The notes: generated from the sequence alone by a model not told the origin. Counted from the first letter of the stretch, positions 1,006 to 57,460 are shown. The stretch is DNA of 64,000 nt from Octopus sinensis (GCF_006345805.1 NC_043024.1:4154001-4218000); one strand, 5' to 3'. Translations and numbers: made by a program.

Positions 1006-2325
1006 TCAGTTATTAGGTTTCTCACCTGTGTGTCTTCGTTTATGTTTATTTAAGTCACTTTTACAGATAAAGGATTTCTCACAGACATCACAATGGTAAG
1101 GCCTTTCCCCAGTGTGACTCCTGATGTGGACAATAAGGTTAGAATTATCGAAGAAGGATTTTCCGCAGATTTCGCAGTGGAATGTTTTTTCACCCCCGTG
1201 TTCCCTTTTGTGCCTTTTTAAATCACTGTTATTGAAGTAGGACTTGCCACATGTTTCACAATGGAAGGCCCTTTCACCAATGTGTTGTAGTTTGTGCCTT
1301 TTTAAATTACTGCTGGAGAAGAAAGATTTCCCACATGTGTCACAGTGGTAGGGTTTCTCACCTGTATGTACTCGTTTGTGGGTAACGAGGCGAGAATTAT
1401 TAATAAAACATTTCCCACACGTTTCACAATTATACGGCTTTTCCCCCGTGTGTACTCTCTGGTGAATGACGAGACGAGAATTCTTAATGAAAGACTTCCC
1501 ACACGTTTCGCAGTGGTAAGGTTTTTCTCCCGTGTGAACACGCATGTGGGTGACGAATTTCGAGTTATTCGGGAAAGATTTGCCACATGTTTCGCAGTGA
1601 AACAAACTTTCCCCCATGTGTTTCCTTTTGTGAATTGTCAAATAGCTATTATTGACGAACGATTTTCCGCATAAATCGCAAGAGTAAGGTTTTTCCCCCG
1701 TGTGGCTCCGTATGTGGGTGACGAGGCTGGAATTCTTTATAAAAGACTTTCCGCAGACTTCGCAATGGTAGCGCTTTTCCCCCGTATGGATCCTCACGTG
1801 ACTCGTTAGATAACTATTGTCGACGAACGACTTTCCGCAGATCTCACAGTGGAACGGTTTTTCCCCCGTGTGGCTCCGCATGTGGATAACGAGGCGAGAA
1901 TTATAAGGAAAAGATTTCCCGCATATCTCACAGTCTAACGAGTTTTCCCCCGTGTGCATTCGTTTATGGCTCGTTAAATAACTATTATCCACAAAAGATT
2001 TTCCACATATTTCACAGTGGTAAGGTTTTTCTCCCGTGTGATTACGAACATGGTTAACGAGATGAGTTTTCTGATTAAAAGATCTCCCGCAAATTTCACA
2101 ATGAAATGGTTTTTTCCCAGTGTGTAATCTTCTGTGTTTCGACAAATTACTTCTATTAACGAAAGATTTGCCGCATATTTCGCAATTAATATTTCTCAGT
2201 AATGATTTTCGTTTAGTAAATGATTCACACAGTAACGATCTCTCGCCATCGGATGTCCGTTTAATCGAATCTATATTCTCAGAAATATTTGTGTTAGAAG
2301 TGTCTGAGTGATTACCATCCTCCAT
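1006..2325 (-). CDS. ZNF1: C2H2 zinc-finger protein, 14 fingers, 439 aa
   Basis: Intact ORF with 14 C-x2-C-x12-H-x3-H repeats, TGEKP-type linkers and N-terminal MEDGNHSDTSNTN motif. Confidence 0.95.
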   Translation of the reverse strand: MEDGNHSDTSNTNISENIDSIKRTSDGERSLLCESFTKRKSLLRNINCEICGKSFVNRSNLSKHRRLHTGKKPFHCEICGRSFNQKTHLVNHVRNHTGEKPYHCEICGKSFVDNSYLTSHKRMHTGENSLDCEICGKSFPYNSRLVIHMRSHTGEKPFHCEICGKSFVDNSYLTSHVRIHTGEKRYHCEVCGKSFIKNSSLVTHIRSHTGEKPYSCDLCGKSFVNNSYLTIHKRKHMGESLFHCETCGKSFPNNSKFVTHMRVHTGEKPYHCETCGKSFIKNSRLVIHQRVHTGEKPYNCETCGKCFINNSRLVTHKRVHTGEKPYHCDTCGKSFFSSSNLKRHKLQHIGERAFHCETCGKSYFNNSDLKRHKREHGGEKTFHCEICGKSFFDNSNLIVHIRSHTGERPYHCDVCEKSFICKSDLNKHKRRHTGEKPNN

Positions 2326-2805
2326 ATTAACCCTGGAGAAATTGTTAAGGACTTCGAAAATATCTTTGAATATATTCTATTCTGGTTCAGCTTCTTGTCT
2401 CAGGGCACTCATATCACGGAACTTGGCTTACAGGTGTAGGAAACATACAATGTAGATATCTTTTGTTGTTTATTTCTGGCTGGGACATCTCCAAGTGACA
2501 CACATATTGTAAGCAGAAAGACTTCTTCCTACATTAATAATTGTGGATATAATTAACAGATGTCAGGTAGGCTACAAACATAGAGAGAGAGCATCCGTAA
2601 TTGACTGGTAGCAGGTGTTCTGGTGGAATTGGTATTTTTGGGTGACAGGTGGTAATGGAACATTCAGCACAACTGTAAAGGAAGAAAATATATGTGTAAA
2701 ACACCTGTTGGAGAAAAAAAGACAGGTGTGTAGATGTGTGTGTATATGCTACATATATGTTATAGATACATGTGTTTGTGTGTTTGTGTGTTATATTTAT
2801 ACAAG

Positions 2806-3075
2806 GCATCATCATCATCATTGTTCAACTGTGGTTGAAACAATGGAATTTACTATGTTACGCCAGACTTCAAGGTCCATCACGGCATTACGGAGGTCCT
2901 GTTGCTGGATGCCTGTATCCCTGGAGATTACATCAGGGTAGGAGAGTGTGCGCCCTCTGGTATTGCGAGTAGATGGCTTCCAGAGGAGAAGAGTAGAAAT
3001 TACTTCTTTTTCAGCTCTACAACAATGTCCAGCAAACTGCACTCTCTTACCTTTCACAAGAGATGACACAGGTGG
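2806..3075 (-). mobile_element. RTE-clade LINE 3' end
   Basis: FAGHCCR...LLLWKP...DTG...WR motif followed by a (TGA)n tail. Confidence 0.8.
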
Positions 3076-3744
3076 TAGTTTCCCATATATTTATACAGGG
3101 CACATGGCCTAGTGGTTAGGATCTTACACTCACGATCTAGCAATTGTGATTTCAATCCCTATATCAGGTGGTGTGGTGTGTTTTTGAACAAAACACTTCA
3201 CCTCATATCACTTTCACACCTGACGCGTGGTACACCGTTCGTCTTTTCAGACAATGTAAATTTGATGGAGGCCGTGACCTAATACGCAGCACAAACATTT
3301 GATCACAATAAACAAATCACTTGTACAGGTAGTTCAACAAAAGCTCAATGCTCATATGGCACCCATTCTATATATATATGTGTGTGTGTGGAGGCACATG
3401 GCCTAGTGATTAGAGCAGTGGACTCACGGTTTGAATCTCAGATCGGGCGATGTCTGTGTTTATGAGCAAAACACCTAGGCTCCATGCGGCTCCGGCAGAA
3501 GGTAATGGTAAACTTCTGCTGACTCTTTCGCCACAATTTTCTCTCACTCTTTCCTCCTGCATCTTGCAGCTCACCTGCGACGGACCGGCGTCCCGTCCAG
3601 GGATCGCGGGTTCGAATCTCAGATCGGGCGATGTGTGTGTTTATGAGCAAAACACCTAAGCTCCACGCGGCTCCGGCAGAAGGTAATGGTAAACTTCTGC
3701 TGACTCTTTCGCCACAATTTTCTCTCACTCTTTCCTCCTTAGTG

Positions 3745-3911: not shown

Positions 3912-3957
<46 letters not shown>

Positions 3958-4451: not shown

Positions 4452-4499
<48 letters not shown>

Positions 4500-7062: not shown

Positions 7063-7744
7063 TGAAAGAGTTTTACATTCACACACACACAATTTCATAA
7101 ACATAAATATATGTGTGTGTGTGTAGGTGCAATGGCCCAGTGGTTAGGGCAGCAGACTCGCGGTCGGAGGATGGCGGTTTTGATTCCCAGATCGGGCGTT
7201 GTGTGTGTTTATTGAGCGAAAACACCTAAAGTTTCACGAGGCTCTGGCAAGGGGTGGAAGCGACCCCCTGCTGTACCATTTCGCCCCAACTTTCTCTCAC
7301 TCTTTCTTCCTGTTTCTTGGATAACGCTGCAACGGACTTGCGTCCTGTCCAGCTGGGAGGGAACACATACGCCACAGAAACCGGGCCCATGAGCCTGGCT
7401 AGGCTTGAAAATGGCGCATAAATAAAAATAATAAATATATATATACACACACACACACATATTTCGTGTGTGCACCTACACATAGCCAGTAGAGTCTTTG
7501 AATATCTGAACCTCACTGTCTCCTTTCTCTTCTTACCTTGACCATTTTTTTCCTTCTTGTACTCATCCATTGTTTCCGATAACAATCGCAATTCTGAAAT
7601 TTTGCTTTATTTTTCCTAAAATTTCTATATATTTTACATTTTGTCTCTCTCTGTCCATTTCCTCTTCGCTTTAGACACAAGACTTCTACTGGACAGCTAT
7701 TCTAATATTCTGTCACATTTCCTCCCTCCGACAACTATCTAACA

Positions 7745-8122
7745 GTCATATATTTTCTTCCTTTGCAGTTATGCTGAATGTTGCTTTACAACCTGTCGTA
7801 CAAGAATCCTGATTCCACTAGAATACCTGCTACCAGTAATTTCTGGATCCGTATATGTTTGTAGTGTACATAACTTCTCTTAACTCTATCCACAAATATT
7901 ACTGTAGATATGCAAGTCTTTTTGTATGCAGTATGTGTGCCACTCAGATATGCCCTGGCCAGCAACAAACACTCTAAGTGTTCTGTAGAAAAGATATCTA
8001 CATTGCATATTTCCTACACATGTAAACAGAATCCCATGAGATGGATATCATAAGACAAGAAACTGAACCATTATAGACTATATCCACAGACATCAGTTTT
8101 GAGGAATTTCTTCAGAGTTAAT
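7745..8122 (+). promoter_or_regulatory. Conserved ~350-nt 5' leader of ZNF genes starting at a 3' splice acceptor (ttttcttcctttgcag, 7768/7769)
   Basis: Homologous block upstream of every ZNF; poly-Y+CAG acceptor kept in ZNF1 (2673), ZNF2 (7768), ZNF3 (18610), ZNF5 (32385), ZNF7 (48505) and ZNF8 (58697); homology stops just beyond it. Confidence 0.65.
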
Positions 8123-9421
8123 ATGGAGGATGGTAATCACTCAGACACTTCTAACACAAATGTTTCCGATGATACAGATTCAGTTAAGCAGACATCCAGT
8201 GGTGAGATATTATCGTGTAAAAAAAGTCCATTACAGAAACCTATTAAATGTGAAATTTGCGGAAAATCTTTTGCAAATAGAAGTAATTTAACGAAACACA
8301 AAAGATTACACACGGGGAAAAAACCGTTTCGATGTGAAATTTGCGGGAAATTGTTGAATCAGAAAGCTCACCTTGTCCTCCACAAACGTAGTCACACCGG
8401 GGAAAAACCCTACAAATGTGAAACCTGTGGAAAATCATTTGCGGACAATAGTTATTTAAGAAGTCACAGACGAATACATACGGGAGAAAATCCTTTTGGG
8501 TGTGAGATCTGTGGAAAATCCTTTACCCATAATTCTCGGCTTGTTCTCCACATCCGTAGCCACACTGGGGAAAAACCCTTCCACTGTGAAATCTGTGGAA
8601 AATCATTTGTGGATAATAGTTCTTTAACAACTCACAAAAGAGTCCACACTGGGGAAAAACCTTATCACTGTTATACTTGTGGAAAATCCTTTGTCAATAA
8701 TAGTTGCCTGACAATTCACAAAAAAATTCACACGGATGAGAAACCTTACCACTGCGATATATGCGGAAAATCGTTTGTGTATAACTGTGACGTGACGCGT
8801 CACAAGAGGATTCACACGGGGGAAAAACCTTTCCGCTGTGAAATCTGCGGAAAATCTTTTGCCAGTAATGGCTATTTGACAATTCACAAACGAATTCACA
8901 CTGGAGACAAAATGTTCGACTGCGGAATTTGTGGAAAATGCTTCATCAGTAAATCAACGCTCGTTACGCATCTACAGATCCACAGCAAAGAGAAAACCTA
9001 TCATTGTGACACATGCGGAAAATCATTCATTACCAATTCTCGTCTTGTAGTTCATAAAAAAATACATTCCGGGGAAAAACTTTTCCACTGCGAAATATGC
9101 GGAAAGTCTTTCCTTAATAACGGTCATCTCGTTTGCCACAAACGAGTCCACACAGGCGAGAAACCATTCTATTGTGAAGCATGTGGTAAATATTTCTATA
9201 CTAGCAGTCAGCTGACAAGACATAAAATACTCCATACTGGGAAAAAACCATTCCGTTGTGAAACATGTAGTAAATCGTTCTCTGATAAATCTAATCTTAG
9301 GAGTCACATCCGTACCCACACTGGGGACAGGCCATGGCGCTGTGAAACTTGTGGTAAATCTTTCATCTACCAAAGTGACTTGAATAAACACAGACGAATC
9401 CATACAGGGGAGAAGCCTTAA
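8123..9421 (+). CDS. ZNF2: C2H2 zinc-finger protein, 14 fingers; the only plus-strand paralog
   Basis: ORF from ATG 8123 (MEDGNHSD); 14 fingers; ends HTGEKP-stop. Confidence 0.95.
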   Translation: MEDGNHSDTSNTNVSDDTDSVKQTSSGEILSCKKSPLQKPIKCEICGKSFANRSNLTKHKRLHTGKKPFRCEICGKLLNQKAHLVLHKRSHTGEKPYKCETCGKSFADNSYLRSHRRIHTGENPFGCEICGKSFTHNSRLVLHIRSHTGEKPFHCEICGKSFVDNSSLTTHKRVHTGEKPYHCYTCGKSFVNNSCLTIHKKIHTDEKPYHCDICGKSFVYNCDVTRHKRIHTGEKPFRCEICGKSFASNGYLTIHKRIHTGDKMFDCGICGKCFISKSTLVTHLQIHSKEKTYHCDTCGKSFITNSRLVVHKKIHSGEKLFHCEICGKSFLNNGHLVCHKRVHTGEKPFYCEACGKYFYTSSQLTRHKILHTGKKPFRCETCSKSFSDKSNLRSHIRTHTGDRPWRCETCGKSFIYQSDLNKHRRIHTGEKP

Positions 9422-16012: not shown

Positions 16013-17323
16013 TCATCTCAGTGATATTGTCCTTGTGGTATGTGTTCGTTTGTGACAATTCAAATGACTTTTACAGATAAATGATTTATCGCATGTGTCA
16101 CAATGATACGGCCTTTCCCCGGTGTGACTCCGGATGTGGACAATAAGGTTAGAATTATCGAAGAAAGATTTTCCGCAAATTTCACAGTGGAACGTTTTTT
16201 CACCATCGTGAATTCGTTTGTGTCTTTTTAAATCGCAATTATTAAAATAAGATTTTCCGCATATTTCGCAGTGGAATTCTTTCTTCTCAGTGTGTATAAT
16301 TTTATGCCTTCTCAAATTACTGCTAGAATAGAAATATTTTCCACATATATCGCAATGAGAGGGTTTATCTCCAGTATGAACTTTCTCGTGACCAACAAGA
16401 AGAGATTTATAATAAAAAGCATTTCCGCAGATTTCACATTTGAATTTCTTTTTCCCAGAGTGTATAATATTGTGTCTTCTTAAATTACTCTTGCAGGAGA
16501 AATATTTCCCGCAGATTTCACAGTGGAATGGTTTTTCGCCAGTGTGGACTGTTCTGTGAGCAACAAGATGGGAATTATTAATGAAATATTTACCACAGAT
16601 TTTGCAGTGAAAGGGGTTTTCACCCGTGTGTTTCCGCTGGTGACCCACAAAACGAGAATTGCTAATGAATGATTTTCCGCATATATCACAGCAGTATGTT
16701 TCTTCTCCTCTGTGAAGACGTCTATGATTAACAAGTTTTGAAATATCCACGAAAGATTTTCCACATATATCACAGCAGTATGTTTCTTTTCTGCTGTGAA
16801 GACATCTGTGATTAACGAGTTTTGAAATATCCACGAAAGATTTTCCACATATATCACAGCAGTATGTTTCTTCTCCGCTGTGAAGACGTCTGTGAGTAAC
16901 AAGTTTTGAAATATCCACAAAAGATTTTCCACATATTTCGCAGTGAAATGGTTTTTTGTCGGAGAGCTTTCTTTTCTGAATTCTTAAATAACCATTATTG
17001 ACAAATGGTTTCTCATATATTTCACAGTGGTATTGCCTTTCTCCGTCGTGAATTTTTTTATGATTCGTCAGTGAACTATTATTCACAAATGATTTTCCAC
17101 ACGTGTCACAGTGGGATGGTTTCTCCCCGGTGTGACTACGTTTATGAACAATAAGTTGAGACCTGTAAGTATATAAGTTCCCGCAAATTTCACAATGAAT
17201 ATTTTTCTGTAATGAACTTCGTTTATGAGACAGTGGCTTCTCACTACCAGACGCCTGTTTAACTGAATCTACACTGTCAGAAACGTTTGTGTTAGAAGTG
17301 TCCGAGTGATTACCATCCTCCAT
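16013..17323 (-). CDS. ZNF3: C2H2 zinc-finger protein, 13 fingers plus 1 degenerate
   Basis: ATG 17323; one finger lacks the second Cys and both His (CEIYEKPF...QKRKL); three near-identical VDISKLV fingers. Confidence 0.93.
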   Translation of the reverse strand: MEDGNHSDTSNTNVSDSVDSVKQASGSEKPLSHKRSSLQKNIHCEICGNLYTYRSQLIVHKRSHTGEKPSHCDTCGKSFVNNSSLTNHKKIHDGERQYHCEIYEKPFVNNGYLRIQKRKLSDKKPFHCEICGKSFVDISKLVTHRRLHSGEETYCCDICGKSFVDISKLVNHRCLHSRKETYCCDICGKSFVDISKLVNHRRLHRGEETYCCDICGKSFISNSRFVGHQRKHTGENPFHCKICGKYFINNSHLVAHRTVHTGEKPFHCEICGKYFSCKSNLRRHNIIHSGKKKFKCEICGNAFYYKSLLVGHEKVHTGDKPSHCDICGKYFYSSSNLRRHKIIHTEKKEFHCEICGKSYFNNCDLKRHKRIHDGEKTFHCEICGKSFFDNSNLIVHIRSHTGERPYHCDTCDKSFICKSHLNCHKRTHTTRTISLR

Positions 17324-19062: not shown

Positions 19063-19428
19063 TACTCTTTTACTTGTTTCAGTCATTTGACTGCGGCCAT
19101 GCTGGAGCACCGCCTTCAGTCGAGCAAATCGACCCCGGGACTTATTCTATCAGTCTCTTTTGCCGAACTGCTAGTTGACGGGGACATAAACACACCATCA
19201 TCGGTTGTCAAGCAATGCTAGGGGGGACAAACACACACACACATACATATATATATATACATATATACGACAGGCTTCTTTCAGTTTCCGTCTACCAAAT
19301 CCACTCACGAGGCATTGGTCGGCCCGGGGCTATAGCAGAAGACACTTGCCCAAGATGCCATGCAGTGGGACTGAACCCGGAACCATGTGGTTGGTTAGCA
19401 AGCTACTTACCACACAGCCACTCCTGCG
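19063..19428 (-). mobile_element. SINE family A
   Basis: Reverse-complement copy. Confidence 0.9.
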
Positions 19429-23645: not shown

Positions 23646-24899
23646 TTATGAATCACAATTCAAAGATTTTCCTTTGCTGTGTGTTCGTTTGTGGCTATTC
23701 AAGTGACTTTTACAAATAAAAGATTTACCGCATATTTCACACGAACAAGGCCTTTCTCCTGTGTGACTACGAACATGGACTTTAAGATGACACTTATTGA
23801 AGAAGGATTTCCCGCAAATTTCACAGTGGAACGTTTTTTCTTCATCATGAAATCTTTTGTGTCTTTTTAAATCATAATTATCAGAGTAAGATTTTCCACA
23901 TACTTCGCAGTGGAATTCTTTTTTGTCATTATGTACTATACTGTGTCTTCTTAAATTACTCCCAGAACGGAAAGATTTTCCACATACTTCACATGGGAAC
24001 GGTTTTTCTCCTGTATGAATTCGTCTATGAAAAATGAGATTTGAGAGATTAATAAAAGATTTTCCACACGTTTCACAATAATAAGGTTTGTCTCCTGTGT
24101 GAACTCTTTTGTGAACTAGAAGACAAGCTTTCCTAATAAATGATTTTCCGCAGATTTCACAGTGGAAGGGCTTTTCTCCAGTGTGAATTCGTTTGTGATT
24201 TATCAAACAATCATTATGGAGATACGATTTTCCACATATATCACAGCAATAAGGTCTCTCCCCCGTGTGAATTCTTCTGTGAATTTTTAAGGCACTATTA
24301 TTAATAAATGATTTTCCACAGATAACACACTGATACGGTTTTTCCCCTGTGTGGATTTTTCTGTGACTGTTTAAAGCACTATTACTGACAAATGATTTTC
24401 CACACGTTTCACAGCGGAAAGGTTTTTCTCCCGTGTGGCTTCGTACATGGTCGACAAGGCGAGAATTATGAGTATACGATTTTCCACATATCTGACACAC
24501 AAAAGATCTTTCTCCCGTGTGAATTCGTTTGTGAGTTGTTAAATTAGTGGAATCAACAAAAGATTTTCCACATATATCACAGTGATAGGGTTTTTCTCCA
24601 GTGTGACTACGTTTGTGGACAATAAGTTGGTATTTCTGATTAAATGACTTTCCACAAATCTCACATTGAAATGGTTTTTCCCCAGTGTGTAACCTTTTAT
24701 GTTTTGTTAAATTACTGGAATTCGCAAAAGATTTTCCACATATCTCACAATTAATATTTCCCTTTGACGACTTTTCTTTTTGAGATAAAGTTTTCTTACC
24801 ACAAGATAATTGTTTCTGCACGTTGGATGTCTGTTTAACTGAATCTGTATCATCGGAAACATTTGTGTTAGAAACATCTGAGTGATTACCATCCTCCAT
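23646..24899 (-). CDS. ZNF4: C2H2 zinc-finger protein, 13 fingers, 417 aa
   Basis: Intact ORF; closest paralog is ZNF5 (shared N-terminal spacer and HSKGKSLNCDS C-terminus). Confidence 0.95.
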   Translation of the reverse strand: MEDGNHSDVSNTNVSDDTDSVKQTSNVQKQLSCGKKTLSQKEKSSKGNINCEICGKSFANSSNLTKHKRLHTGEKPFQCEICGKSFNQKYQLIVHKRSHTGEKPYHCDICGKSFVDSTNLTTHKRIHTGERSFVCQICGKSYTHNSRLVDHVRSHTGEKPFRCETCGKSFVSNSALNSHRKIHTGEKPYQCVICGKSFINNSALKIHRRIHTGERPYCCDICGKSYLHNDCLINHKRIHTGEKPFHCEICGKSFIRKACLLVHKRVHTGDKPYYCETCGKSFINLSNLIFHRRIHTGEKPFPCEVCGKSFRSGSNLRRHSIVHNDKKEFHCEVCGKSYSDNYDLKRHKRFHDEEKTFHCEICGKSFFNKCHLKVHVRSHTGERPCSCEICGKSFICKSHLNSHKRTHSKGKSLNCDS

Positions 24900-24930
24900 A
24901 TCAACGCTGGAGGAATTCTTGAAAACTGAT

Positions 24931-25696
24931 AATTAATAATAATAATGAAATTATTGTATACAGTGCTCAGGTGCACCACAACTTGTCAGAAAGTGCATAT
25001 AAAGTACATGCAGTAATGTACAAATGTCTGGGAAGTGAACAGTGTATGAATCAGATACATGCCCGTGTGTGTATGGAGGGGAGAAAATCAGTTGTAGTGT
25101 TGGCGAATCTCAGGAAGCATGGAAGTTTTGAAGGATGCAGTGCTCCGACAACTAACAACTGATGCCGGCAGTTTGTTCCATGCTTGAGCAACTCTTAGAG
25201 TGAAAAAATGTTTCTGAAAGAAAATTTAATTATTTTAATAATAATAATAATGAAATTATTGTATACAGTGCTCAGGTGCACCACAACTTGTCAGAAAGTG
25301 CGTATAAAGCATATGCAGTAATGTACAAATGTCTGGGAAGTGAACAGTGTATGAGTCAGATACATGCTTGCGTGTGTATGGAGGGGAGAAAGATCAGGTG
25401 TAGTGTTGACAAATCTCAGGAACCTTGGAAGTTTTGAAGGATGCAGTGCTCCGACAACTAACAACTGATGCCGGCAGTTTGTTCCATGCTTCAGCAACTC
25501 TTAGCGTGAAAAAATGTTTCCTAAAGTCATGGAAGGAGCTGTGCTGTTTTCTGACTTTGTAAACATGTCCACGGGTGTTAGACGGGTGCAGTTTGAAAAG
25601 GTGATCAGAGTTATTGTTTATAAGATGGTTGATAATTTTATGGGTGTCTGCCAAGTCAGCTGCCAGATGTTGAAGCTTCAATGTGTCCATGCCCAG
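24931..25696 (-). mobile_element. Two tandem CR1-like 3' ends (family 2), 30 nt upstream of the ZNF4 ATG
   Basis: NTRGHVYKVRKQ...FFTLRVAEAWNKLP...FK; (TTA)n tails. Confidence 0.9.
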
Positions 25697-30299: not shown

Positions 30300-31637
30300 T
30301 TATGAATCGCAATTCAAAGATTTTCCTTTGCTGTGTGTTCGTTTGTGGCTATTCAAGTGACTTTTACAAATAAAAGATTTACCGCAAATTTCACAGGAAC
30401 AAGGCCTTTCTCCAGTGTGACTACGAACATGGACAATAAGATTACAATTATCGAAGAAAGATTTTCCGCAAATTTCGCAGTGGAACGTTTTTTCACCATC
30501 GTGAATTCGTTTGTGTCTTTTTAAATCACAATTATTAAAATAAGATTTTCCACAAATTTCACAGTGGAATTCTTTTTTCTCAGTATGTATAATATTATGT
30601 CTTCTTAAATTACTCCCAGAATAGAAAGATTTTCCACATATTTCACAAGGGAATGGTTTTTCCCCTGTATGTATTCTTCTGTGACCAATGAGATGTGAAT
30701 TATTAATAAAAGATTTTCCGCACGTTTCACAAAAATAAGGCTTCTCACCTGTGTGAACTCTTTTGTGAAGCAGAAGACGGGAATTCCTAATAAATGATTT
30801 TCCGCAGATTTCACAGCGGTGAGGTTTTTCCCCGGTGTGGCTATGTACGTGGATAACAAGTTTTGAGCTATTAATGAAGGATTTTCCGCAGATTTCACAG
30901 TGATAAGGCTTTTCCCCCGTGTGAATTCGTTTGTGAATTGTTAGACAACTGCTATTGACGAAAGATTTTCCACATATATCACAGCAATAAGGTCGTTCCC
31001 CCGTGTGAATTCTCCTGTGGATTTTTAAGGCGCTATTACTAATAAATGATTTTCCACAGATAACACACTGATACGGTTTTTCCCCTGTATGGATTCTGCT
31101 GTGACTTCTTAAAGAACTATTACTGACAAAGGATTTTCCACACGTTTCACAGCGGAAAGGTTTTTCTCCCGTGTGACTTCGAACATGGGCAACAAGGCGA
31201 GAATTATGCGTAAAGGACTTTCCACATATCTGACACACAAAAGATCTTTCTCCCGTGTGAATTCGTTTGTGACTTGTTAAATAAGTATAATCGACAAATG
31301 ATTTTCCACATATATCACAGTGATAGGGTTTTTCTCCAGTGTGACTACGTTTGTGGACAATAAGGTGATATTTCTGATTCAATGATTTTCCACAAATTTC
31401 ACACTGAAACGGTTTTTCCCCCGTGTGTAATCGTCTGTGTTTTGTTAAATTACTGGAATTCACAAAAGATTTTCCACATATCTCACAATTAATATTTCCC
31501 TTTGACGACTTTTCTTTTTGAGATAAAGTTTTCTTACCACAAGATAATTGTTTCCGCACATTGGATGTCTGTTTAACTGAATCTGTATCATCGGAAACAT
31601 TTGTGTTAGAAGTGTCTGAGTGATTACCATCCTCCAT
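30300..31637 (-). CDS. ZNF5: C2H2 zinc-finger protein, 14 fingers
   Basis: ATG 31637; intact ORF; one more finger than ZNF4. Confidence 0.95.
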   Translation of the reverse strand: MEDGNHSDTSNTNVSDDTDSVKQTSNVRKQLSCGKKTLSQKEKSSKGNINCEICGKSFVNSSNLTKHRRLHTGEKPFQCEICGKSLNQKYHLIVHKRSHTGEKPYHCDICGKSFVDYTYLTSHKRIHTGERSFVCQICGKSFTHNSRLVAHVRSHTGEKPFRCETCGKSFVSNSSLRSHSRIHTGEKPYQCVICGKSFISNSALKIHRRIHTGERPYCCDICGKSFVNSSCLTIHKRIHTGEKPYHCEICGKSFINSSKLVIHVHSHTGEKPHRCEICGKSFIRNSRLLLHKRVHTGEKPYFCETCGKSFINNSHLIGHRRIHTGEKPFPCEICGKSFYSGSNLRRHNIIHTEKKEFHCEICGKSYFNNCDLKRHKRIHDGEKTFHCEICGKSFFDNCNLIVHVRSHTGERPCSCEICGKSFICKSHLNSHKRTHSKGKSLNCDS

Positions 31638-31690
31638 ATTAACGCTGGAGGAATTCCTCAAAACTTATGTCTGTGGATATAATCTATTAT

Positions 31691-32075
31691 GAGGAGGCGC
31701 AATGGCCCAGTGGTTAGGGCAGCGGATTCGCGGTCGTAGGATTGCGGTTTCGATCCCCAGACCGGGCGTTGTGAGTGTTTATTGAGCGAAAACACCTAGA
31801 GCTCCACGAGGCTCCGGCAGGGGATGGTGGTGATCCCTGCTGTACTCTTTCACCACAACTTTCTCTCACTCTTTGTTTCTGTTGTACCTGTATTTCAAAG
31901 GGCCGGCCTTGTCACTCTCTGTGTCACGCTGAATATCCCCAAGAACTACGTTAAGAATACACGTGTCTGTGGAGTGCTCAGCCACTTACATGTTAATTTC
32001 ATGAGAAGGCTGTTCCATTGTTCGGATCAACCGGAACCCTCGTCGTCGTAACCGACGGAGCGCTTCCATCCATCC
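31691..32075 (+). mobile_element. SINE family C, 53 nt upstream of the ZNF5 ATG
   Basis: 10-bp TSD AATCTATTAT (31681-90 / 32076-85). Confidence 0.9.
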
Positions 32076-37578: not shown

Positions 37579-37972
37579 AGGCGCAGGAGTGGCTGTGTGG
37601 TAAGTAGCTTGCTAACCAACCACATGGTTCCAGGTTCAGTCCCACTGCGTGGCATCTTGGACAAGTGTCTTCTGCTATAGCCTCGGGCTGACCAATGCCT
37701 TGGGAGTGGATTTAGTAGACGGAAAATGAAAGAAGCCTGTCGTATATATGTATATATATATGTGTGTGTGTTTGTGTGTCTGTGTTTGTCCCCCTAGCAT
37801 TGCTTGACAACCGATGCTGGTGTGTTTACGTCCCCGTCACCTAGCGGTTCGGCAAAAGAGACCAATAGAATAAGTACTAGGCTTACAAAGAATAAGTCCC
37901 GGGGTCGATTTGCTCGACTAAAGGCGGTGCTCCAGCATGGCCGCAGTCAAATGGCTGAAACAAGTAAAAGTG
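37579..37972 (+). mobile_element. SINE family A
   Basis: Full copy. Confidence 0.9.
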
Positions 37973-39517: not shown

Positions 39518-40913
39518 TCAACAATTAGGTTTTTCACCTGTGTGTCTTCGTTTATGTTTATTTAAGTCATTTTTACAGGTAAATGATTTCTCACAGGTGT
39601 CACAATGATACGGCCTTTCTCCAGTGTGGCTACGAATGTGAACAATAAGATCGGAATTATCGAAGTAGGATTTTCCACAGATTTCACAGTGGAATGTCTT
39701 ATCTCCAAAATGTTCCCATTTGTGTCTTTTTAAATTATAATCATTAAAGTAAGACTTGCCACATGTTTCACAATGGAAGGCTTTTTCCCCAATGTGTTGT
39801 AGTTTGTGTCTTCTTAAACTACTGCTACGGAAGAAAGATTTCCTACATGTGTCACAATGATAAGGCCTTTCTCCTGTATGACTACGAATATGAACAATAA
39901 GATCGGAATTATCGAAGAAGGATTTCCCACAGACTTCACAACAGTAGGGGACTATCCCCAGCGTGCTTTTGTTTATGTGTATTCAAGTGGCTTTTATAAG
40001 TAAACGATTTCTCACAGACATCACAATGATAGGGCCTTTCTCCAGTGTGGCTACGAATGTGGGCAATAAGATTACAATTATCAAAAAAAGATTTACCACA
40101 GATTTCACAGTGAAACGTCTTTTCCCCATCATGAATCCTTTTGTGTCTTTTTAAATCACAATTATTAAAATAAGATTTTGCACATACATCACAATGAAAG
40201 GCCTTTTCCCCAATATGTTGCAGCTTGTGCCTGGTTAAATTACTCTTACAGTAGAAATATTTCTCACAGGTTTCGCAAAAGAAGGGTTTTTCCCCCGTGT
40301 GGACTCGTTTGTGACTCGTCAAAGAACCCTTAATGGCGAACGACATTCCGCAGATCTCGCAGTGGAATCGTTTTTCTCCCGTGTGTACCGTTTTGTGTTT
40401 AGCGAGATGAGACTTCATCAGAAAAGACTGTCCGCAGATCTGGCAATTATAGAGACTTCCTTCGATGTGTTTTCTCTTGTGAACTCGAACGGACTTGGTG
40501 GTGCTGAAAGATTCTCCACACATGTTACACTGGAATGGTTTTTCTCCGGTGTGAATTGCCTTGTGAATTTTCAAGGCAGTATTCCTAGCAAAAGACTTCC
40601 CGCATGTGTCACAACGGTAAGGTTTCTCTCCCGTGTGAACCCTCTTGTGACTCGGTAAGCAACTTTTATCTGCAAATGATTTTCCACACACATCACAGTG
40701 GAAGGGTTTTTCCCCCGTGTGGGTCCGTTTGTGAATAACAAGGCAAAAATTGTACGTAAAAGATTTTCCACATATTTCACAATAAAGATTCCGCTTTGAC
40801 GATTTTTCTTTACGCGATAAAGTTTTCTTACAAGGGGATGTTCGTTTCTCATTGCCAGATGTCTGTTTAACTGAATCTATATTAAAAGTGTTCGAGTCTT
40901 TACAATCCTCCAT
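39518..40913 (-). CDS. ZNF6: C2H2 zinc-finger gene, 10 fingers + 5 more after a +1 frameshift at ~39947
   Basis: ATG 40913; ORF stops at 39936 as assembled; removing one C from CCCC opens a stop-free 143-codon frame (39946-39518) with five canonical fingers ending HTGEKPNC-stop. Confidence 0.85.
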
Positions 40914-40964
40914 ATTAACTCTGAATAAATTCTTCAAAACTATTGTCTGTAGTTATACTGTATT

Positions 40965-42400
40965 TAATAATAATAATAATGAAATTATTGTATACAGTGC
41001 TCAGGTGCACCACAACTTGTCAGAAAGTGCGTATAAAGTATATCCAGTAATGTACATATGTCTGGGAAGTGAACAGTGTATGAGTCAGATACATGCATGT
41101 GTGTGTATGGAGGGGAGAAAATCAGGTGTAGTGTTGGTGAATCTCAGGAATATTGGAAGTTTTGAAGGATGCAGTGCTCCGACAACTAACAACTGATGCC
41201 GGCAGTTTGTTCCATGCTTCAACTCTTAGCATGAAAAAATGTTTCTGAAAGAAAATTTAATTATTTTGATAATAATAATAATGAAATTATTGTATACAGT
41301 GCTCAGGTGCACCACAACTTGTCAGAAAGTGTGTATAAAGCATATGCAGTAATGTACAAATGTCTGGAAAGTGAACAGTGTATGAGTCAGATAGATGCTT
41401 GTGTGTGTATGGAGGGGAGAAAATCAGGTGTAGTGTTGGTGAATCTCAGGAAGCATGGAAGTTTTGGAGGATGCAGTGCTCCGACAACTAACAACTGATG
41501 CCGGCAGTTTGTTCCATGCTTCAACTCTTAGCATGAAAAAATGTTTCCGAAAGAAAATTTAATTATTTTGATAATAATAATAATGAAATTATTGTATACA
41601 GTGCTCAGGTGCACCACAACTTGTCAGAAAGTGTGTATAAAGCATATGCAGTAATGTACAAATGTCTGGAAAGTGAACAGTGTATGAGTCAGATAGATGC
41701 TTGTGTGTGTATGGAGGGGAGAAAATCAGGTGTAGTGTTGGTGAATCTCAGGAAGCATGGAAGTTTTGGAGGATGCAGTGTTCCGACAACTAACAACTGA
41801 TGCCGGCAGTTTGTTCCATGCTTCAGCAACTCTTAGCATGAAAAAATGTTTCCGAAAGAAAATTTAATTATTTTGATAATAATAATAATGAAATTATTGT
41901 ATACAGTGCTCAGGTGCACCACAACTTGTCAGAAAGTGTGTATAAAGCATATGCAGTAATGTACAAATGTCTGGAAAGTGAACAGTGTATGAGTCAGATA
42001 TATGCTTGCGTGTGTATGGAGGGGAAAAAATCAGGTGTAGTGTTGGCGAATCTCAGGAAGCATGGAAGTTTTGAAGGATGCAGTGCTCCGACAACTAACA
42101 ACTGATGCTGGCAGTTTGTTCCATGCCTCAGCGTGTGTATGGAGGGGAGAAAATCAGGTGTAGTTTGGCAATCTCAGGAAGCGGAAGTTTGAAGGATGCA
42201 GTGCTCCGACAACTATCAACTGATGCGGCAGTTTGTTCCATGCTTCAGCAACTCTCAGCGTGAAAAAATGTTTCCTAAAGTCATGGAAGGAGCTGTGCTG
42301 TTTTCTGACTTTGTAAACATGTCCAAGGGTGTTAGATGGGTGGAGTTTGAAAAGGTGCTCAGAGTTATTGTTTGTAAGATGGTTGATAATTTTGATAATT
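40965..42400 (-). mobile_element. Four tandem CR1-like family 2 3' ends (~302-bp period), ~50 nt upstream of the ZNF6 ATG
   Basis: Tail motif gaaattattg at 40981, 41283, 41585, 41890. Confidence 0.9.
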
Positions 42401-46510: not shown

Positions 46511-47988
46511 TCATAACTCTAAGGCTTTCTCAAAGTGTTTTTTACGTTTGTGTTGAGTCAAATCGCTAAGAATTACAAATGATTTCTCACAGATGTCACA
46601 ATGGTAAGGCCTTTCTCCAGAGTGACCCCGTTTATGTCTGTTCAGGTGACTACTACAGGTAAAAGCTTTCCCGCAGATATCACAAAAACAGGGCCTTTCT
46701 CCTGTGTGAGTACGAACGTGAACAATAAGGTTACAATTATCAAAGAAGGATTTTCCGCAGATTTCACAGTGAAATGTTTTTTCGCCATCATGTTTTATTT
46801 TGTGTCTTTTCAAATCACAATTATTAAAATAAGATTTACCACATAATTCGCAGTGGAATTCTTTTTTCCCAGAGTGTTGGAGTTTGTGCTTTGTCAAATT
46901 GCTTCTAGAAGAGTAATTTTTCCCACACGTTTCACAGTGGAACGGTTTTTCCCCGGTGTGGACTCTTTTGTGACCAACGAGTTGCGAATTGTTAATAAAA
47001 GATTTGCCACATGTTTCACAATCGTGAAGCTTCTCCCTCGAGTGTTTCCTTTTGTGGAGTGTAAGAAGATAGTTCTTAGCAAAAGATTTACCACATGTGT
47101 CACAATTATGAAGCTTCTCCCGAGTGTGTTTTCTCTTGTGGAGCGTAAAAAGGGAGTTCTTTGTAAACGATTTACCACATGTTTCGCAGTGGTAAGTTTT
47201 TACTTTCATGTGGCTTTTCATATGAGTAACAAGCGTTGACCTATTAATGAAGCATTTCCCACATAAATCACAAGGGTAAGGTCTCTCTCCGGTGTGTATT
47301 CGTTTGTGAATTCTTAAGGCGCTGCTAGTCACGAAAGATTTCCCACATGTGATGCACTGAAACGGTTTCTCTCCAGTATGGATTCTATTGTGATACGTCA
47401 CGGATCGGTTACTGGCAAAGGACTTTCCACATATTTCACAGCAGAATGGTTTTTCCCCGGTGTGGCTCCGTTTATGAATAATAAGGGGATACTTATACGC
47501 GAACGACTTACCACATGTTTCACAAGAATACGGCTTTTCTCCCGTGTGGCTTCGTACATGGTCAACAAGCCGAGAATTATGACTGAATAATTTACCACAT
47601 GTCTGACACGAAAAACATTTTTCGCCCGTGTGCATTTTTTTGTGAATCTTTAAATAACATTTATCCACAAATGATTTTCCACACGTGTCACACCTGTAGG
47701 GTTTTTCACCTGTGTGACTACGTTTGTGGAGGACAAGGTGAGCTTTCTGGTTCAGCAATTTCCCGCAAATTTCACATCGAAACGGTTTTTTACCCGTATG
47801 CAATCTTTTGTGCTTCGTTAAATTACTTTTATTCACAAAAGTTTTTCCGCAAATTTTACACTCAACATTACTCCGCTTTGAACTTCCGTTATCAGACAAA
47901 GGTTCCTTACCCTCGGATGTCTCTTTAACGAACCTATATCATCGGAAACGTTTGTGTCAGAAGTGTCCAACTCATTACCATCCTCCAT
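46511..47988 (-). CDS. ZNF7: C2H2 zinc-finger gene, 16 fingers, -1 frameshift at ~47929 between the N-terminal motif and the finger array
   Basis: ATG 47988 gives MEDGNELDTSDTNVSDDIGS; one base is missing relative to paralogs (tttaacgaacc vs tttaaccgaatc); restoring it joins to ORF 47899-46511. Confidence 0.85.
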
Positions 47989-52849: not shown

Positions 52850-52884
<35 letters not shown>

Positions 52885-52886
<2 letters not shown>

Positions 52887-55309: not shown

Positions 55310-56035
55310 CGAGCCCCGTGCTAGTAGGGTGCTAAGAACACCATCCGAGCATGATCATTGCCAGAGTGGCTATCTGGCCTCCGTGCTGGTGGCATGTAAA
55401 AGACACCATTTGAGCGTGATCGTTACCAGCATCGCCTTACTGGCACCTGTGCTGGTGGCATGCGTAAAAGATTCGAGCGAGGTTGTTGCTAGTACTGCCT
55501 GACTGGCTCCGTGCCGGTGGCAAGTAAAAGCACCCACTACACTCTCGGAGTGGTTGGCGTTAGGAAGGGCATCCAGCTGTAGAAACTCTGCCAGATCAAG
55601 TTTGGAGCCTGGTGCAGCCATCTGGCTTCCCAGTCCTCAGTCATTCGTCCAACCCATGCTAGCATGGAAAGCGGACATTAATGACGATGATGATTTCTCA
55701 CGTTGTGATATCAGTGCCGATGGCACGTAAGAGAGCCATCCGAACGTGGCCGTTGCCAGCGCCGCCCCGACTGGCCTCCGTGCCAGTGGCACGTAAAATG
55801 CACCATCCGATTGTGGCCGTTGCCAGCCTCGTCTGGCACCTGTGCAGGTGGCATGTAAAAGCACCCACTACACACTTGGAGTTGTTGGCGTTAGGAAGGG
55901 CATCCAGCTGTAGAAACATTGCCAGATAAGACTGGGCCTGGTGCAGCCATCTGGTTCGCCAGCCCTCAGTCAAAATCGTCCAACCCATGCCAGCATGGAA
56001 AATGGACGTTAAATGAAGAAGATGATGATGATGAT
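55310..56035 (+). mobile_element. Two tandem SINE B copies abutting the ZNF8 stop codon
   Basis: Each ends in (GAT)n followed by ttctca. Confidence 0.85.
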
Positions 56036-56038
56036 TTC

Positions 56039-57460
56039 TCATGTCCCACTTTTCAAATTCTTACCTACAGTGTGCGTCCGTTTGTGTTTAGTCAAATGAC
56101 TGTTACATATAAAAGATTTCCCGCAGATTTCACAATAATATGGCCTTTCCCCCGTGTGCCTTCGGTTGTGCGTGTTCAAGGAGCTTTTACAAGTAAACGA
56201 ATTTCCACAGATGTCACAATGATACGGCTTTTCCCCGGTGTGTCTTTGTTTGTGTTTATTCAAACTACTTTTACTGACAAAAGATTTCTCACAGATGTCG
56301 CAATGATAAGGCTTTTCTCCAGTGTGACTACGGATGTGGGCAACAAGATTACAATTATCAAAGAAAGATTTTCCGCAGATTTCACAGTGAAACGTTTTCT
56401 CGCAATTATGAATCCGTTCGTGTCTTTTTAAATCATCATTATTAAAGTAAGATTTTCCACATATTTCACAGTGGAATTCTTTTTTCCCAACGTGAATTAT
56501 TTTGTGTCTGGTTAAATTACTGTTTGAGGAGAAATATTTCCCACAAATATCACACTGCGAGGGTTTGTCCCCTGTGTGGACCCTTTTATGAGCAACCAGT
56601 AAATAATTATTTAGGAAGGACTTGCCACAGATTTCACAGTGAAATGGTGTGTCCCCAGTGTGAACTCTCTTGTGACCAACGAGGAGAGAATTATTCAAGA
56701 ATGATCTCCCACAGACTTCACAGGTGTAACGTTTACCTTCGGTGTGTAATCTCTTGTGGACTCCGAGAGAATATATATTAGCAAATAATTTCCCACAGGT
56801 TTCACAGTGGTGAGATTTTTCCGCGCTGTGGGTCCTCTTGTGTTTCGTTAAGAAGCTCTTATAAGCATAAGACTTTCCACATATTTCACACCTGTAGGGT
56901 TTTTCACCTGTGTGGCTACGAATGTGGAGGACAAGGAGGTAATTGTAAGCGAATAATTTTCCGCATATTTGACAGGAGAATGGTTTTTCCCCGCTGTGCC
57001 TCTTTTTGTGGGCCTTTAAATAATAATATTCCACAAAAGACTTTCCACATATTTCACAGTTGTAAAGTTTTTCTTCCGTGTGAATTTCCTCGTGAGCATT
57101 CAAAGTACTTTCATCAACAAATTTTTTTCCACATATTTCACAGCGGAAAGGTTTTTCCTCAGTGTGACTACGTTTGTGGACAACAAGATGAGACTCCCGA
57201 TTCAATGATTTTCCGCTGATTTCATACCGAAGTGGTCTTTCCCCAGCGTGTAACCTTTTGTGTTTTTTTAAATTACTGCAATTTACAAAAGATTCCCCAC
57301 AAATTTCACAATTAATAGTTCTCTGTAATGAACTTTCATTATCAGATAATGGTTTCTTACCATGAGATAATGGTTCCTCAGCACCAGATGTCTGTTTAAC
57401 CGAATCTATATTCCCAGAAATATCTGTGTTAGAAGTGTCTGAGTGATTACCATCCTCCAT
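56039..57460 (-). CDS. ZNF8: C2H2 zinc-finger protein, 14 fingers plus 1 degenerate
   Basis: ATG 57460; second finger lost both Cys (YEISGKSL). Confidence 0.93.
   Translation of the reverse strand: MEDGNHSDTSNTDISGNIDSVKQTSGAEEPLSHGKKPLSDNESSLQRTINCEICGESFVNCSNLKKHKRLHAGERPLRYEISGKSLNRESHLVVHKRSHTEEKPFRCEICGKKFVDESTLNAHEEIHTEEKLYNCEICGKSFVEYYYLKAHKKRHSGEKPFSCQICGKLFAYNYLLVLHIRSHTGEKPYRCEICGKSYAYKSFLTKHKRTHSAEKSHHCETCGKLFANIYSLGVHKRLHTEGKRYTCEVCGRSFLNNSLLVGHKRVHTGDTPFHCEICGKSFLNNYLLVAHKRVHTGDKPSQCDICGKYFSSNSNLTRHKIIHVGKKEFHCEICGKSYFNNDDLKRHERIHNCEKTFHCEICGKSFFDNCNLVAHIRSHTGEKPYHCDICEKSFVSKSSLNKHKQRHTGEKPYHCDICGNSFTCKSSLNTHNRRHTGERPYYCEICGKSFICNSHLTKHKRTHTVGKNLKSGT

Follow-up and report, generated by a model that had tools for sequence, protein, structure and literature searches.

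A C-terminal cassette of four zinc fingers (A-B-C-D), found in a cluster of C2H2 genes of Octopus sinensis, owes its constancy to purifying selection acting on the protein, not to recent gene conversion. The constraint is strongest on fingers B and C, in which differences between genes are nearly all synonymous. The middle fingers of the same proteins are subject to whole-finger duplication and to near-neutral change of their helices.

The gene cluster and its ordered cassette

The DNA analysed (the window, 64,000 nucleotides) lies on O. sinensis chromosome CM016886.1 (GCA_006345805.1), in which the protein of gene Z1 has an exact match. Eight C2H2 genes, each a single ORF, lie in the window; seven are on the minus strand and the eighth is inverted. 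They have 10-16 fingers per gene, each of exactly 28 aa; this periodicity is strict in all eight genes and perfect over the 113 finger motifs counted. The paralog cluster comprises nine genes within ~73 kb. The genes and their main landmarks are as follows.

1006..2325, minus strand: Z1, 14 fingers; N-terminal motif, fingers 1-2, cassette with D = CKSDLNKHKRRH
8123..9421, plus strand: Z2, inverted, 14 fingers
9167-9418, plus strand: Z2 C-terminus, with A-like, C-like and D-like fingers, lacking finger B
16013..17323, minus strand: Z3, 14 finger units, one degenerate; lacks finger 1; canonical cassette
23646..24899, minus strand: Z4, 13 fingers; recent sister of Z5; drifted cassette
30300..31637, minus strand: Z5, 14 fingers; most canonical copy
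39936..40913, minus strand: Z6, 10 fingers; lacks N-terminal fingers; canonical cassette
39527..39946, minus strand: Z6b, second cassette C-A-B-C-D, five fingers, past the Z6 stop codon
46511-47899 (46511..47988 with the N-terminal motif), minus strand: Z7 ORF, 16 finger units
56039..57460, minus strand: Z8, 15 finger units, finger 2 degenerate

The proteins are of the Krueppel poly-C2H2 type, with tandem C-X2-C-X12-H-X3-H units and TGEKP-like linkers, and they match PF00096 and PF13465 in Pfam (E 1e-38 to 1e-109). As had been predicted, they are KRAB-less: four full-length proteins matched zinc-finger families only, with no KRAB (PF01352), SCAN, BTB/POZ or ZAD, and the N-terminal 47-50 aa of three genes had no match at E≤10. 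Thus no known effector domain was found by Pfam in full-length proteins or N-terminal regions, and we rejected membership of the KRAB-ZNF family and of the SCAN-, BTB/POZ- and ZAD-ZNF families. The setting is also as repeat-rich as expected, with 67.5% of non-genic bases repeated within the window and at least 25 copies of a SINE-like element of ~250 bp.

The original prediction of an ordered terminal cassette in the seven minus-strand genes was borne out in 7/7, always C-terminal and in the order A, B, C, D. The finger consensus sequences are xSNLxRH for A, SYFNNCDLKRH for B, SFFDNxNLIVH for C and CKSHLNxH for D.

1015..1350, minus strand: Z1 cassette A-B-C-D
16025..16360, minus strand: Z3 cassette A-B-C-D
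23664..23999, minus strand: Z4 cassette A-B-C-D, drifted
30318..30653, minus strand: Z5 cassette A-B-C-D
30486-30569, minus strand: Z5 finger B
30402-30485, minus strand: Z5 finger C
39948..40283, minus strand: Z6 cassette A-B-C-D, in frame
46607..46942, minus strand: Z7 cassette A-B-C-D
56225..56560, minus strand: Z8 cassette A-B-C-D

Individual genes depart from this plan. The drift noted earlier in Z4 is real (DNYDLKR and NKCHLKV, with 7 helix replacements in B and C), as is the loss of the NNCDLKRH finger from Z2, where A, C and D remain; since the ORFs of both genes are still open, the module is dispensable in some copies. Z6 had been said to carry the cassette twice, and a second copy does exist, but beyond the stop codon and in another frame, shifted by a single additional C within a CCCC stretch; in its cassette this copy is closest to Z1. 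Z8 has two additional D-like fingers after the cassette and has lost both cysteines of finger 2. The last finger of Z7 has atypical His spacing, and P0060, an intact relative of Z7 outside the window, is most likely its ortholog. At the other end of the array, the fingers NxSNLxKH and NQKxxL are common to 6/8 genes, in line with the claim that most genes share them; Z3 and Z6 lack them.

Averaged over gene pairs, identity at the seven helix positions is 0.57 for A, 0.82 for B, 0.67 for C and 0.59 for D, compared to 0.17-0.33 for middle fingers and a background of 0.20 for any finger against any other. Among 20,000 random columns or random ordered four-finger blocks, the maximum was 0.48, below every cassette value. 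N-terminal fingers show a gradient with no step (F1 0.71, F2 0.55, F3 0.40, F4 0.49, F5 0.30). The cassette as a whole had been called near-invariant; this holds for B and C, but A and D are moderately conserved, with dN of 0.27-0.29 versus 0.08 for B and C at similar dS.

The arrangement extends beyond the window. Four relatives on O. bimaculoides CM046627.1 have fingers 1-2 and the A-B-C-D order as in the window, with the N-terminal motif in 3-4 of the four, and a ninth O. sinensis gene shares all three of these features. The family thus belongs to the octopod C2H2 expansions, with clustered paralogs in O. sinensis and relatives in O. bimaculoides.

Selection on the cassette and turnover of the interior

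In B and C, pN is low (0.01-0.16) and pS is high (0.33-0.86), cross-species pairs included, which indicates purifying selection rather than recent gene conversion. Indeed, the combination of low dS with low dN that the original prediction had named as the mark of conversion was not observed: the median dN is 0.08 and the median dS 1.04. Moreover, of the positions with an invariant residue, 12/14 in B and 11/15 in C use two or more codons. The excess constraint over the leading fingers is modest: pN of B and C is lower than that of F1-F4 in 8/10 pairs (median 0.092 versus 0.149), about 1.6-fold, with marginal per-pair significance.

Several observations would fit homogenisation of the cassette by recent gene conversion or concerted evolution. 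The Z1-Z3 pair is mosaic, with pS of 0.36 in finger C and 1.05 in finger B; pS is 0.28 in finger B of Z3-Z5, the lowest of any pair in B or C; finger 2 of Z2 and Z7 is 95% identical; and pS of the O. bimaculoides pair B3-B4 is 0.19. Nevertheless, dS of ~1 in B and C equals the level elsewhere in the genes, and conversion cannot act between species, yet the cassette is conserved across O. sinensis and O. bimaculoides. We consider this explanation highly improbable. A concerted-evolution repeat, in which both synonymous and non-synonymous divergence would be low, was rejected on the same pS and pN ranges.

The interior fingers have a different history. Fingers 4-6 of Z3 are a recent triple duplication (88-93% nucleotide identity), fingers 9 and 10 of Z7 are 79% identical, and a two-finger unit is duplicated in O. 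bimaculoides B1. The number of fingers among relatives varies from 10 to 24, and genealogies are mosaic; the fingers shared by Z0 and B4 are confined to the last five or six. In the youngest pair, Z4/Z5, pN/pS is ~0.84 in the middle helices versus 0.10 in the framework. The original description of the middle as hypervariable is thus supported in part, the change in this pair being near-neutral turnover.

Constrained residues and an acidic N-terminal peptide

The constant fingers show two residue-level signatures. Finger 1 and A conserve base-contact residues only, with contact identity of 0.84-1.00 and non-contact helix identity of 0.19-0.36 against a background of 0.29. In B and C, non-contact identity is 0.63-0.90 and beta-hairpin identity 0.62-1.00 against a background of 0.36. 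Indeed, contacts are the least conserved class in finger C (0.59-0.62, compared to 0.73-0.81 for non-contacts), and contact position +2 is the variable one in B and C. Contact identity per finger is 0.86 for A, 0.75 for B, 0.62 for C and 0.51 for D versus a background of 0.22; B and C, with contacts at 0.59-0.75, retain all features of DNA-competent fingers. The B-C linker is an invariant, non-canonical DGEKT and the linker before B has no proline; canonical Thr and Pro are missing from the linkers on either side of B. In the AlphaFold2 model, the cassette forms four ordinary beta-beta-alpha fingers (pTM 0.52, compared to 0.53 for an F1-F4 control), with pLDDT dropping at both non-canonical linkers and no sign of a packed B-C unit in the model.

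All constant fingers had been proposed to act as a common docking module. B and C fit this proposal, given their whole-domain constraint and non-canonical linkers, but A and finger 1 do not, since conservation confined to the contacts is what base-reading fingers would show.

A conserved acidic N-terminal peptide was overlooked in the original prediction.

31563..31637, minus strand: N-terminal acidic motif of Z5, 25 codons, MEDGNHSDTSNTNVSDDTDSVKQTS
2251-2325, 17249-17323, 24825-24899 and 57386-57460, minus strand, and 8123-8197, plus strand: other intact copies
40839-40913 (Z6) and 47914-47988 (Z7), minus strand: damaged copies
31638..31689, minus strand: proximal part of a shared upstream non-coding block (Z5), common to the paralogs

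The consensus, MEDGNHSDTSNTNVSDxxDSVKQTS, is Ser/Thr/Asn-rich and carries a net charge of about -5. Conserved copies occur in 6/8 window genes, Z0 and three genes of O. bimaculoides; the Z6 copy has an 18-nt deletion, and a 1-bp frameshift cuts the Z7 copy off from its ORF. A diverged copy begins a different O. bimaculoides ZNF, P0005. Pfam returned no match to the motif even at E≤10. Its median pN is 0.09 and its pS 0.22. The upstream block carries an acceptor-like TTCTCCAG/AGTTAAT directly before the ATG and is broken in Z5 by a SINE-like insertion at 31690-32045.

A proposed division of labour and its alternatives

We propose that these genes may form an octopod-specific, KRAB-less poly-C2H2 subfamily, grown by tandem duplication and seen in O. 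sinensis and O. bimaculoides. Each gene would be one coding exon with four modules: the 25-aa acidic N-terminal peptide; two to four leading fingers that stay constant; 3-10 interior fingers that evolve by whole-finger duplication or loss and near-neutral helix replacement; and the constant C-terminal cassette. Two separate functions would be divided among the constant parts. Finger 1 and A (both xSNLx[K/R]H), with conservation limited to their contacts, are most likely common anchors that recognise identical short nucleic-acid triplets from one paralog to the next. B and C, which are constrained over their whole surface and, in C, least at the contacts, most likely have a family-wide role that does not consist in reading bases; they may bind a partner, by self-association or through a shared cofactor, or form a fixed spacer or a hinge. 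Each paralog would owe its own DNA specificity to the variable interior. Counting against the model are the modest excess of constraint on B and C over F1-F4, their DNA-competent features, the AlphaFold2 model with its ordinary folds and no packed B-C unit, and the loss of B from Z2 and drift in Z4. Function is read here from conservation patterns among 7-12 non-independent sequences, and we put the model as a whole at slightly short of an even chance.

The peptide, rather than the cassette, might be the KRAB-like effector or docking module, leaving the cassette a DNA-side role. Its recurrence across genes of both species, its wider spread than the cassette (as the diverged P0005 copy suggests) and its lack of a Pfam match would suit this, as would the analogy with FiNZ, an acidic motif of 28 aa at the N-terminus by which a TE-linked ZNF expansion is defined (PMC10547256); by that analogy, the peptide may be at least as good a candidate effector as the cassette. 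However, its pN is not below that of B and C; part of its conservation lies in the nucleotide sequence, as its low pS shows, and need not be due to protein function; the Z6 and Z7 copies are damaged; and an effector there is compatible with a separate role for the cassette. We regard this substitution as a real but doubtful possibility. Alternatively, all four cassette fingers, with fingers 1-2, might bind a common site of ~12 bp, located for instance in a repeat family or in the promoters of the cluster itself, with the interior adding specificity and no protein docking. Contacts well above background in all four fingers, canonical folds by Pfam and AlphaFold2, and closest solved relatives that are DNA-bound arrays (ZNF568, Aart, PRDM9, CTCF) speak for such an anchor. 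Nevertheless, it seems unlikely to us: for B and C, conservation of the hairpin, the linker and the helix residues outside the contacts equals or exceeds that of the contacts, of which +2 varies; the linkers flanking B are not canonical; constant ends around 3-10 variable fingers would need anchor sites at variable spacing; and a crude recognition-code site, ACGCAGA, occurs 2 times in the window versus 3.95 expected, a weak test.

The constant ends might also have no special function, if unequal crossing-over or slippage spares end repeats, which then look constant under ordinary constraint. Conservation at both array ends, the N-terminal gradient, the clear interior duplication, the range of finger counts and the mosaic genealogies are all expected from such an edge effect. 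Its weakness is that B and C, rather than terminal D, mark the peak of conservation, that dN of B and C is 3-4 times below that of the adjacent A and D, whose dS is similar, and that non-contact surface residues and non-canonical linkers are invariant in both species; we judge it improbable. The division of labour between anchors and B-C remains our preferred reading.

KRAB-ZNFs are defined by an N-terminal KRAB domain (PF01352), recruitment of TRIM28/KAP1 and TE repression. The octopus genes resemble this tetrapod system in their tandem poly-ZNF clusters and in joining a constant module to fast-changing specificity residues, but their constant module consists of fingers and an unrelated peptide. 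The TRIM28-like cofactor and TE targeting suggested originally drew no support from the analysis, which shows the repeat-rich setting. Lineage-specific C2H2 expansions in octopus were reportedly described by Albertin et al. in 2015; like the window, these are tandem clusters of multi-finger KRAB-less genes. They have since been treated by gene trees and expression (Holzinger et al. 2025, PMC12513265); the words 'motif', 'N-terminal' and 'C-terminal' are absent from that paper, and the constant peptide, finger cassette and per-finger selection pattern are not described there. The FiNZ-ZNFs of cyprinid fish (Wells et al. 2023, PMC10547256), for which TE repression has been shown, are likewise a large, lineage-specific, KRAB-less poly-ZNF family, tandem in repeat-rich DNA, with a short acidic motif (~25 aa here); however, they belong to another taxon, the likeness of the motifs is one of kind, and a constant C-terminal finger cassette is not reported for FiNZ.

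The best precedent for the proposed role of B and C is the constant C-terminal C2H2 pair of Ikaros/Hunchback, which serves protein interaction rather than DNA reading (PMC9741631). A long spacer precedes the dimerization fingers of Ikaros, whereas B-C lies within the array with no break in the 28-aa periodicity and is followed by D, on which grounds we rejected assignment to this type; in the AlphaFold2 model B-C also looks canonical. Spacer fingers occur in DNA-bound arrays (CTCF, ZBTB24 ZF4, HIC2 ZF2, TFIIIA ZF6) and are not yet predictable from sequence (PMC12264921), and the N-terminal fingers of PRDM9 are structural or multimerizing (bioRxiv 10.64898/2026.09.10.750150). These are conserved fingers without base-specific contacts beside variable specificity fingers, a division of labour like the one proposed here from sequence. 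The cluster offers a concrete module with which to probe how KRAB-less ZNF expansions work.

The C2H2 array and its terminal cassette

The window holds eight long Krueppel-type C2H2 ORFs (Z1 to Z8), all on the minus strand except for Z2, which is inverted. Exact 28-aa units tile every ORF, with 10–16 units per gene and few degenerate units (unit 3 of Z3, unit 2 of Z8 and unit 16 of Z7). In four full-length proteins, Pfam matched zinc-finger families alone, with no KRAB, SCAN or BTB domain found, and three N-terminal regions of 47–50 non-finger residues had no Pfam match even at E ≤10. Assignment to the KRAB, SCAN, BTB or Ikaros types was considered and rejected, since the defining tests failed; the locus is a member of the known octopus C2H2 expansions, which in the literature searched are described through gene tree and expression, not intraprotein anatomy (PMC12513265). 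By exact look-up, Z1 is the sole window ORF that matches an annotated protein (O. sinensis GCA_006345805.1 CM016886.1, ∼4.15 Mb), and no annotated-protein record was found in this way for the other seven. A ninth family member, Z0, lies in neighboring O. sinensis sequence (L003), and its cassette is of the type seen in gene B4 of O. bimaculoides (TYVNNSDLKRH):

L003 19765-21222, 7.4-8.9 kb left of window position 1, opposite orientation to Z1: Z0, with the N-terminal motif and 16 fingers

The original prediction was that the minus-strand genes share an ordered C-terminal cassette. Indeed, all seven end in four fingers, A to D, in identical order:

Finger A: xSNLx[R/K]H, then a proline-less linker (TEKKE, IGERA or SGKKE)
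Finger B: SYFNN[C/S/D/Y]DLKRH, then DGEKT
Finger C: SFFDN[C/S]NLIVH, then TGERP
Finger D: [C/Y/S]KS[H/D/S]LNxH

Averaged over gene pairs, identity across the seven helix residues is 0.57 in A, 0.82 in B, 0.67 in C and 0.59 in D, compared to 0.20 for any two fingers from different genes and 0.17–0.33 for the interior columns between the constant ends. None of 20,000 random columns or random ordered four-finger blocks matched the observed values (random maximum 0.48). The leading fingers predicted to be shared are also conserved, but they have no sharp boundary; the corresponding values form a gradient of 0.71, 0.55, 0.40 and 0.49 across fingers 1–4.

The exceptions noted in the original prediction are likewise borne out. 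Z2 lacks a B finger but has fingers resembling A, C and D, and the cassette of Z6 is doubled, with five more fingers (C-A-B-C-D, window 39527-39946) past the stop codon and in another frame. A single additional C within a CCCC run (window 39945-39955) separates the two frames of Z6; it may be either a genuine lesion or an assembly error at the homopolymer. The cassette of Z4 has drifted, with 7 helix replacements in B and C relative to its sister Z5. We also observed that in the Z4 cassette (window 23664-23999) synonymous change in the replaced B and C codons is approximately zero, while Z5 keeps the consensus; either constraint was lost or function changed in this one copy.

A modular architecture maintained by selection in two Octopus species

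For the two-finger core B+C (56 codons), the median Nei-Gojobori dN and dS over 21 pairs are 0.08 and 1.04. The corresponding values are 0.27 and 1.08 for A, 0.29 and 1.32 for D, 0.13 and 0.95 for fingers 1–2, and 0.19 and 0.89 for fingers 3–4; thus the description of the cassette as near-invariant fits B and C only, and does not extend to A and D. Gene conversion had been named beforehand as the competing cause of cassette conservation, but it does not account for raw proportions in B+C of 0.01–0.16 for pN with 0.33–0.86 for pS, O. bimaculoides copies included. Recent homogenization of the cassette is ruled out by the B+C dS of 1.04, by a minimum pS of 0.28 for any pair in finger B or C, and by the mixture of codons at residues that are invariant among the copies: two or three different codons occur at 12 of 14 such positions in finger B and at 11 of 15 in finger C. 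Since low pN is combined with high pS and mixed codons, the cassette is old and is maintained at the protein level. There are signs of mosaic ancestry, as Z1 and Z3 have a pS of 0.36 in finger C and 1.05 in finger B and as finger 2 of Z2 and Z7 is 95% identical; these exchanges are themselves old. The pN of B+C is below that of the four leading fingers (F1–F4) in 8 of 10 pairs (medians 0.092 and 0.149), with Z4 in both exceptions, so B+C are indeed more constrained than other fingers conserved in position, though only modestly.

The interior was predicted to be hypervariable. It does turn over, but in Z4 and Z5, the youngest pair (pS ∼0.3), pN/pS is 0.84 for the interior helices, compared to 0.10 for the framework and 0.33 for the F1–F4 helices, which is near-neutral and does not amount to evidence of positive selection. 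Tandem Repeats Finder and a per-finger identity matrix were used to find interior duplications. A tandem trio in Z3 is a recent intragenic finger amplification:

Window 16667-16943: Z3 fingers 4-6, VDISKLV[T/N]H, 88-93% nucleotide identity, 84-nt period at 91%

Fingers 9 and 10 of Z7 are 79% identical, and a two-finger unit is duplicated in O. bimaculoides B1. The interior thus combines near-neutral turnover of specificity residues with gain and loss of fingers. As a separate observation, several arrays have a 168-nt, two-finger periodicity over the 84-nt unit (for example, 1640-2040, 8246-8692 and 30792-31487), which suggests that finger pairs were duplicated as parts of the arrays expanded.

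Relatives in O. bimaculoides were found by a masked query. Searches with the cassette or with full-length Z5 gave matches dominated by generic vertebrate and insect ZNFs, and in an exhaustive profile search, in which giant poly-ZNF proteins were ranked by summed score, the B or C motif was present in none of the first 270 proteins. Only Z5 X-masked except for its N-terminal region and constant helices retrieved a true relative, the O. bimaculoides ‘ZNF708-like’ protein P0391, which is encoded in the following locus:

CM046627.1:20.376-20.401 Mb, O. bimaculoides: L001, four family genes (B1 to B4)

The cassette is found in all four of these genes, two of which are truncated within finger C by assembly gaps. 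The three genes with a 5′ end inside the locus have fingers 1–2 (NSSNLK, NQKYHL) and the N-terminal motif, which reads MEDGNHSDTSNTNVS in two of them and has diverged to MDDSNHLDISNRNVS in the other; one gene of the locus has 24 fingers. We rejected L001 as a syntenic ortholog of the window, as the nucleotide identity of 67–78% is equal to that between paralogs. Z0 and B4 are 82–91% identical in their last five or six fingers (the terminal D only 70%) and 65–78% identical elsewhere; this unevenness implies that the 5′ and 3′ parts of the gene have partly separate genealogies. We conclude that a modular, selection-maintained architecture is common to the two Octopus species, with an interior that turns over.

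The N-terminal peptide, the upstream block and the repeat context

The array also shares an acidic peptide, MEDGNHSDTSNTNVSDxxDSVKQTS, encoded by the first 25 codons:

2251-2325, 8123-8197, 17249-17323, 24825-24899, 31563-31637 and 57386-57460: N-terminal peptide
47914-47988: N-terminal motif of Z7, separated from the ORF by a 1-bp deletion

The Z7 N-terminus is intact in a database fragment, P0060, so the lesion is specific to the Z7 lineage or to its assembly. A diverged form of the peptide heads another O. bimaculoides ZNF, P0005. The peptide codons are conserved at the nucleotide level: their median pS is 0.22, compared to a median of 0.52 that these pairs have in B+C, and in all 15 pairs, cross-species ones among them, the peptide has the lower pS. 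Between Z8 and B3, we found 0 synonymous differences at 15.7 sites in the peptide codons, but 15 at 30 sites in B+C. The low pS of the peptide reflects either nucleotide-level constraint or a mosaic genealogy.

Upstream of each ATG, the paralogs have a non-coding block of ∼300–400 bp in common:

For example, 2326-2700, 7720-8122 and 57461-57790: upstream block

Positions −60 to −1 are ∼75% identical among paralogs and end in an acceptor-like sequence, TTCTCCAG|AGTTAATATGG, immediately 5′ of the ATG, which suggests a 5′ UTR intron or a common promoter. SINE-like insertions split the block in Z3, Z5 and Z7. Directly upstream of Z6 there is a 302-bp tandem repeat (window 40963-42130; 3.9 copies, 96%), and related sequence is found upstream of Z4 (24900-25500); in both genes, sequence of this type takes the place of most of the block.

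The array was originally described as lying in TE-saturated DNA, which is fair for non-autonomous repeats: 67.5% of the non-genic bases are repeated within the window. Several long-unit tandem repeats are present, and the main elements are as follows:

For example, 19179-19428, 37582-37836 and 59412-59656: SINE-like element of ∼250 bp, at least 25 copies on both strands, 78-96% identity
29164-29513, 31690-32045 and 62386-62731: element of ∼360 bp, ∼10 copies, 89% identity to an O. bimaculoides copy in L001
53905-54769: 123-bp tandem repeat, 7 copies, 98% identity
6238-6815: long (CA)n-rich compound microsatellite, which yields a spurious 163-aa ORF

No TE protein domains were found in the ten longest intergenic ORFs of the window, and ARAGORN and Rfam found no tRNA or other RNA families. 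The repeats consist of tandem repeats and of SINE-like elements without coding content.

Two kinds of constant finger and their possible roles

We divided each finger into base contacts (helix positions −1, 2, 3 and 6), non-contact helix positions (−2, 1 and 5), hairpin, inter-histidine residues and linker. In finger 1 and cassette finger A, contacts are conserved at 0.84–1.00, while the non-contact helix positions, at 0.19–0.36, are comparable with the background of 0.29; conservation restricted to the contacts would be expected if these fingers are retained for reading identical bases. In B and C, all classes are conserved (non-contact 0.63–0.90; hairpin 0.62–1.00, background 0.36), and in C the contacts are the lowest class (0.59–0.62), with +2 the position that varies. 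The DGEKT linker is invariant in 5 of 7 copies, and its last three residues, EKT, in 7 of 7. Conservation of B-C over the whole domain, together with the proline-less linkers on either side of B, argues that B-C may be retained for a role beyond base recognition. The AlphaFold2 model of the cassette is of four ordinary fingers (pTM 0.52, compared to 0.53 for an F1–F4 control), with lower confidence at the two non-canonical linkers, and compared to the control it gave no sign of a packed B-C unit. A PDB sequence search found generic arrays only.

A tentative but quite possible reading of these patterns is that A and F1 would be base-reading anchors common to all paralogs, that B-C would form a unit, common to the whole family, that contacts a partner or serves as a fixed spacer instead of reading bases, and that the interior fingers would set the specificity of each paralog. 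The best precedents for B-C are the Ikaros-type protein-interaction fingers (PMC9741631) and spacer fingers (PMC12264921). The rival view of a plain DNA anchor holds that the whole cassette binds DNA. ACGCAGA, the site that the recognition code gives for B/C/A, occurs 2 times in the window against 3.95 expected and so shows no enrichment, but with a code this crude the result is no argument against such an anchor. Constant ends might also be a pure edge effect of array turnover. Alternatively, the N-terminal peptide may be the actual effector, which is compatible with a separate role for the cassette; the FiNZ-ZNFs (PMC10547256), closest in kind to the octopus genes, likewise lack KRAB and carry a short acidic motif at the N-terminus.

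Extending the reading of B-C as a non-base-reading unit, we regard as unlikely, although worth stating, the idea that B-C and its proline-less flanking linkers form a finger-built docking surface that would tether every member of the subfamily to one shared partner, be it another member of the family or a cofactor in silencing or chromatin, and that the complex would be aimed at repeat families by the variable interior together with the constant xSNLx[K/R]H fingers. If true, such docking by B-C would amount to a functional counterpart of KRAB/TRIM28 in an invertebrate, made from zinc fingers themselves. The analogy with KRAB/TRIM28 and the targeting of TEs by this cluster, both part of the original prediction, are put forward as hypotheses.

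Octopus genomes each contain well over a thousand C2H2 genes, and we know of none with KRAB or another recognized effector domain; for this reason their mode of action is obscure. Two small modules, a peptide of ∼25 aa and a two-finger core of ∼56 aa, are constant across old paralogs and two species, and each is separable for fusion, deletion or use as bait, which opens the action of KRAB-less invertebrate ZNF expansions to direct experiment. The locus is a clean natural case of division of labor within an array, in which some fingers are constant, probably as base readers, others are constant over their whole surface, and the interior runs free.
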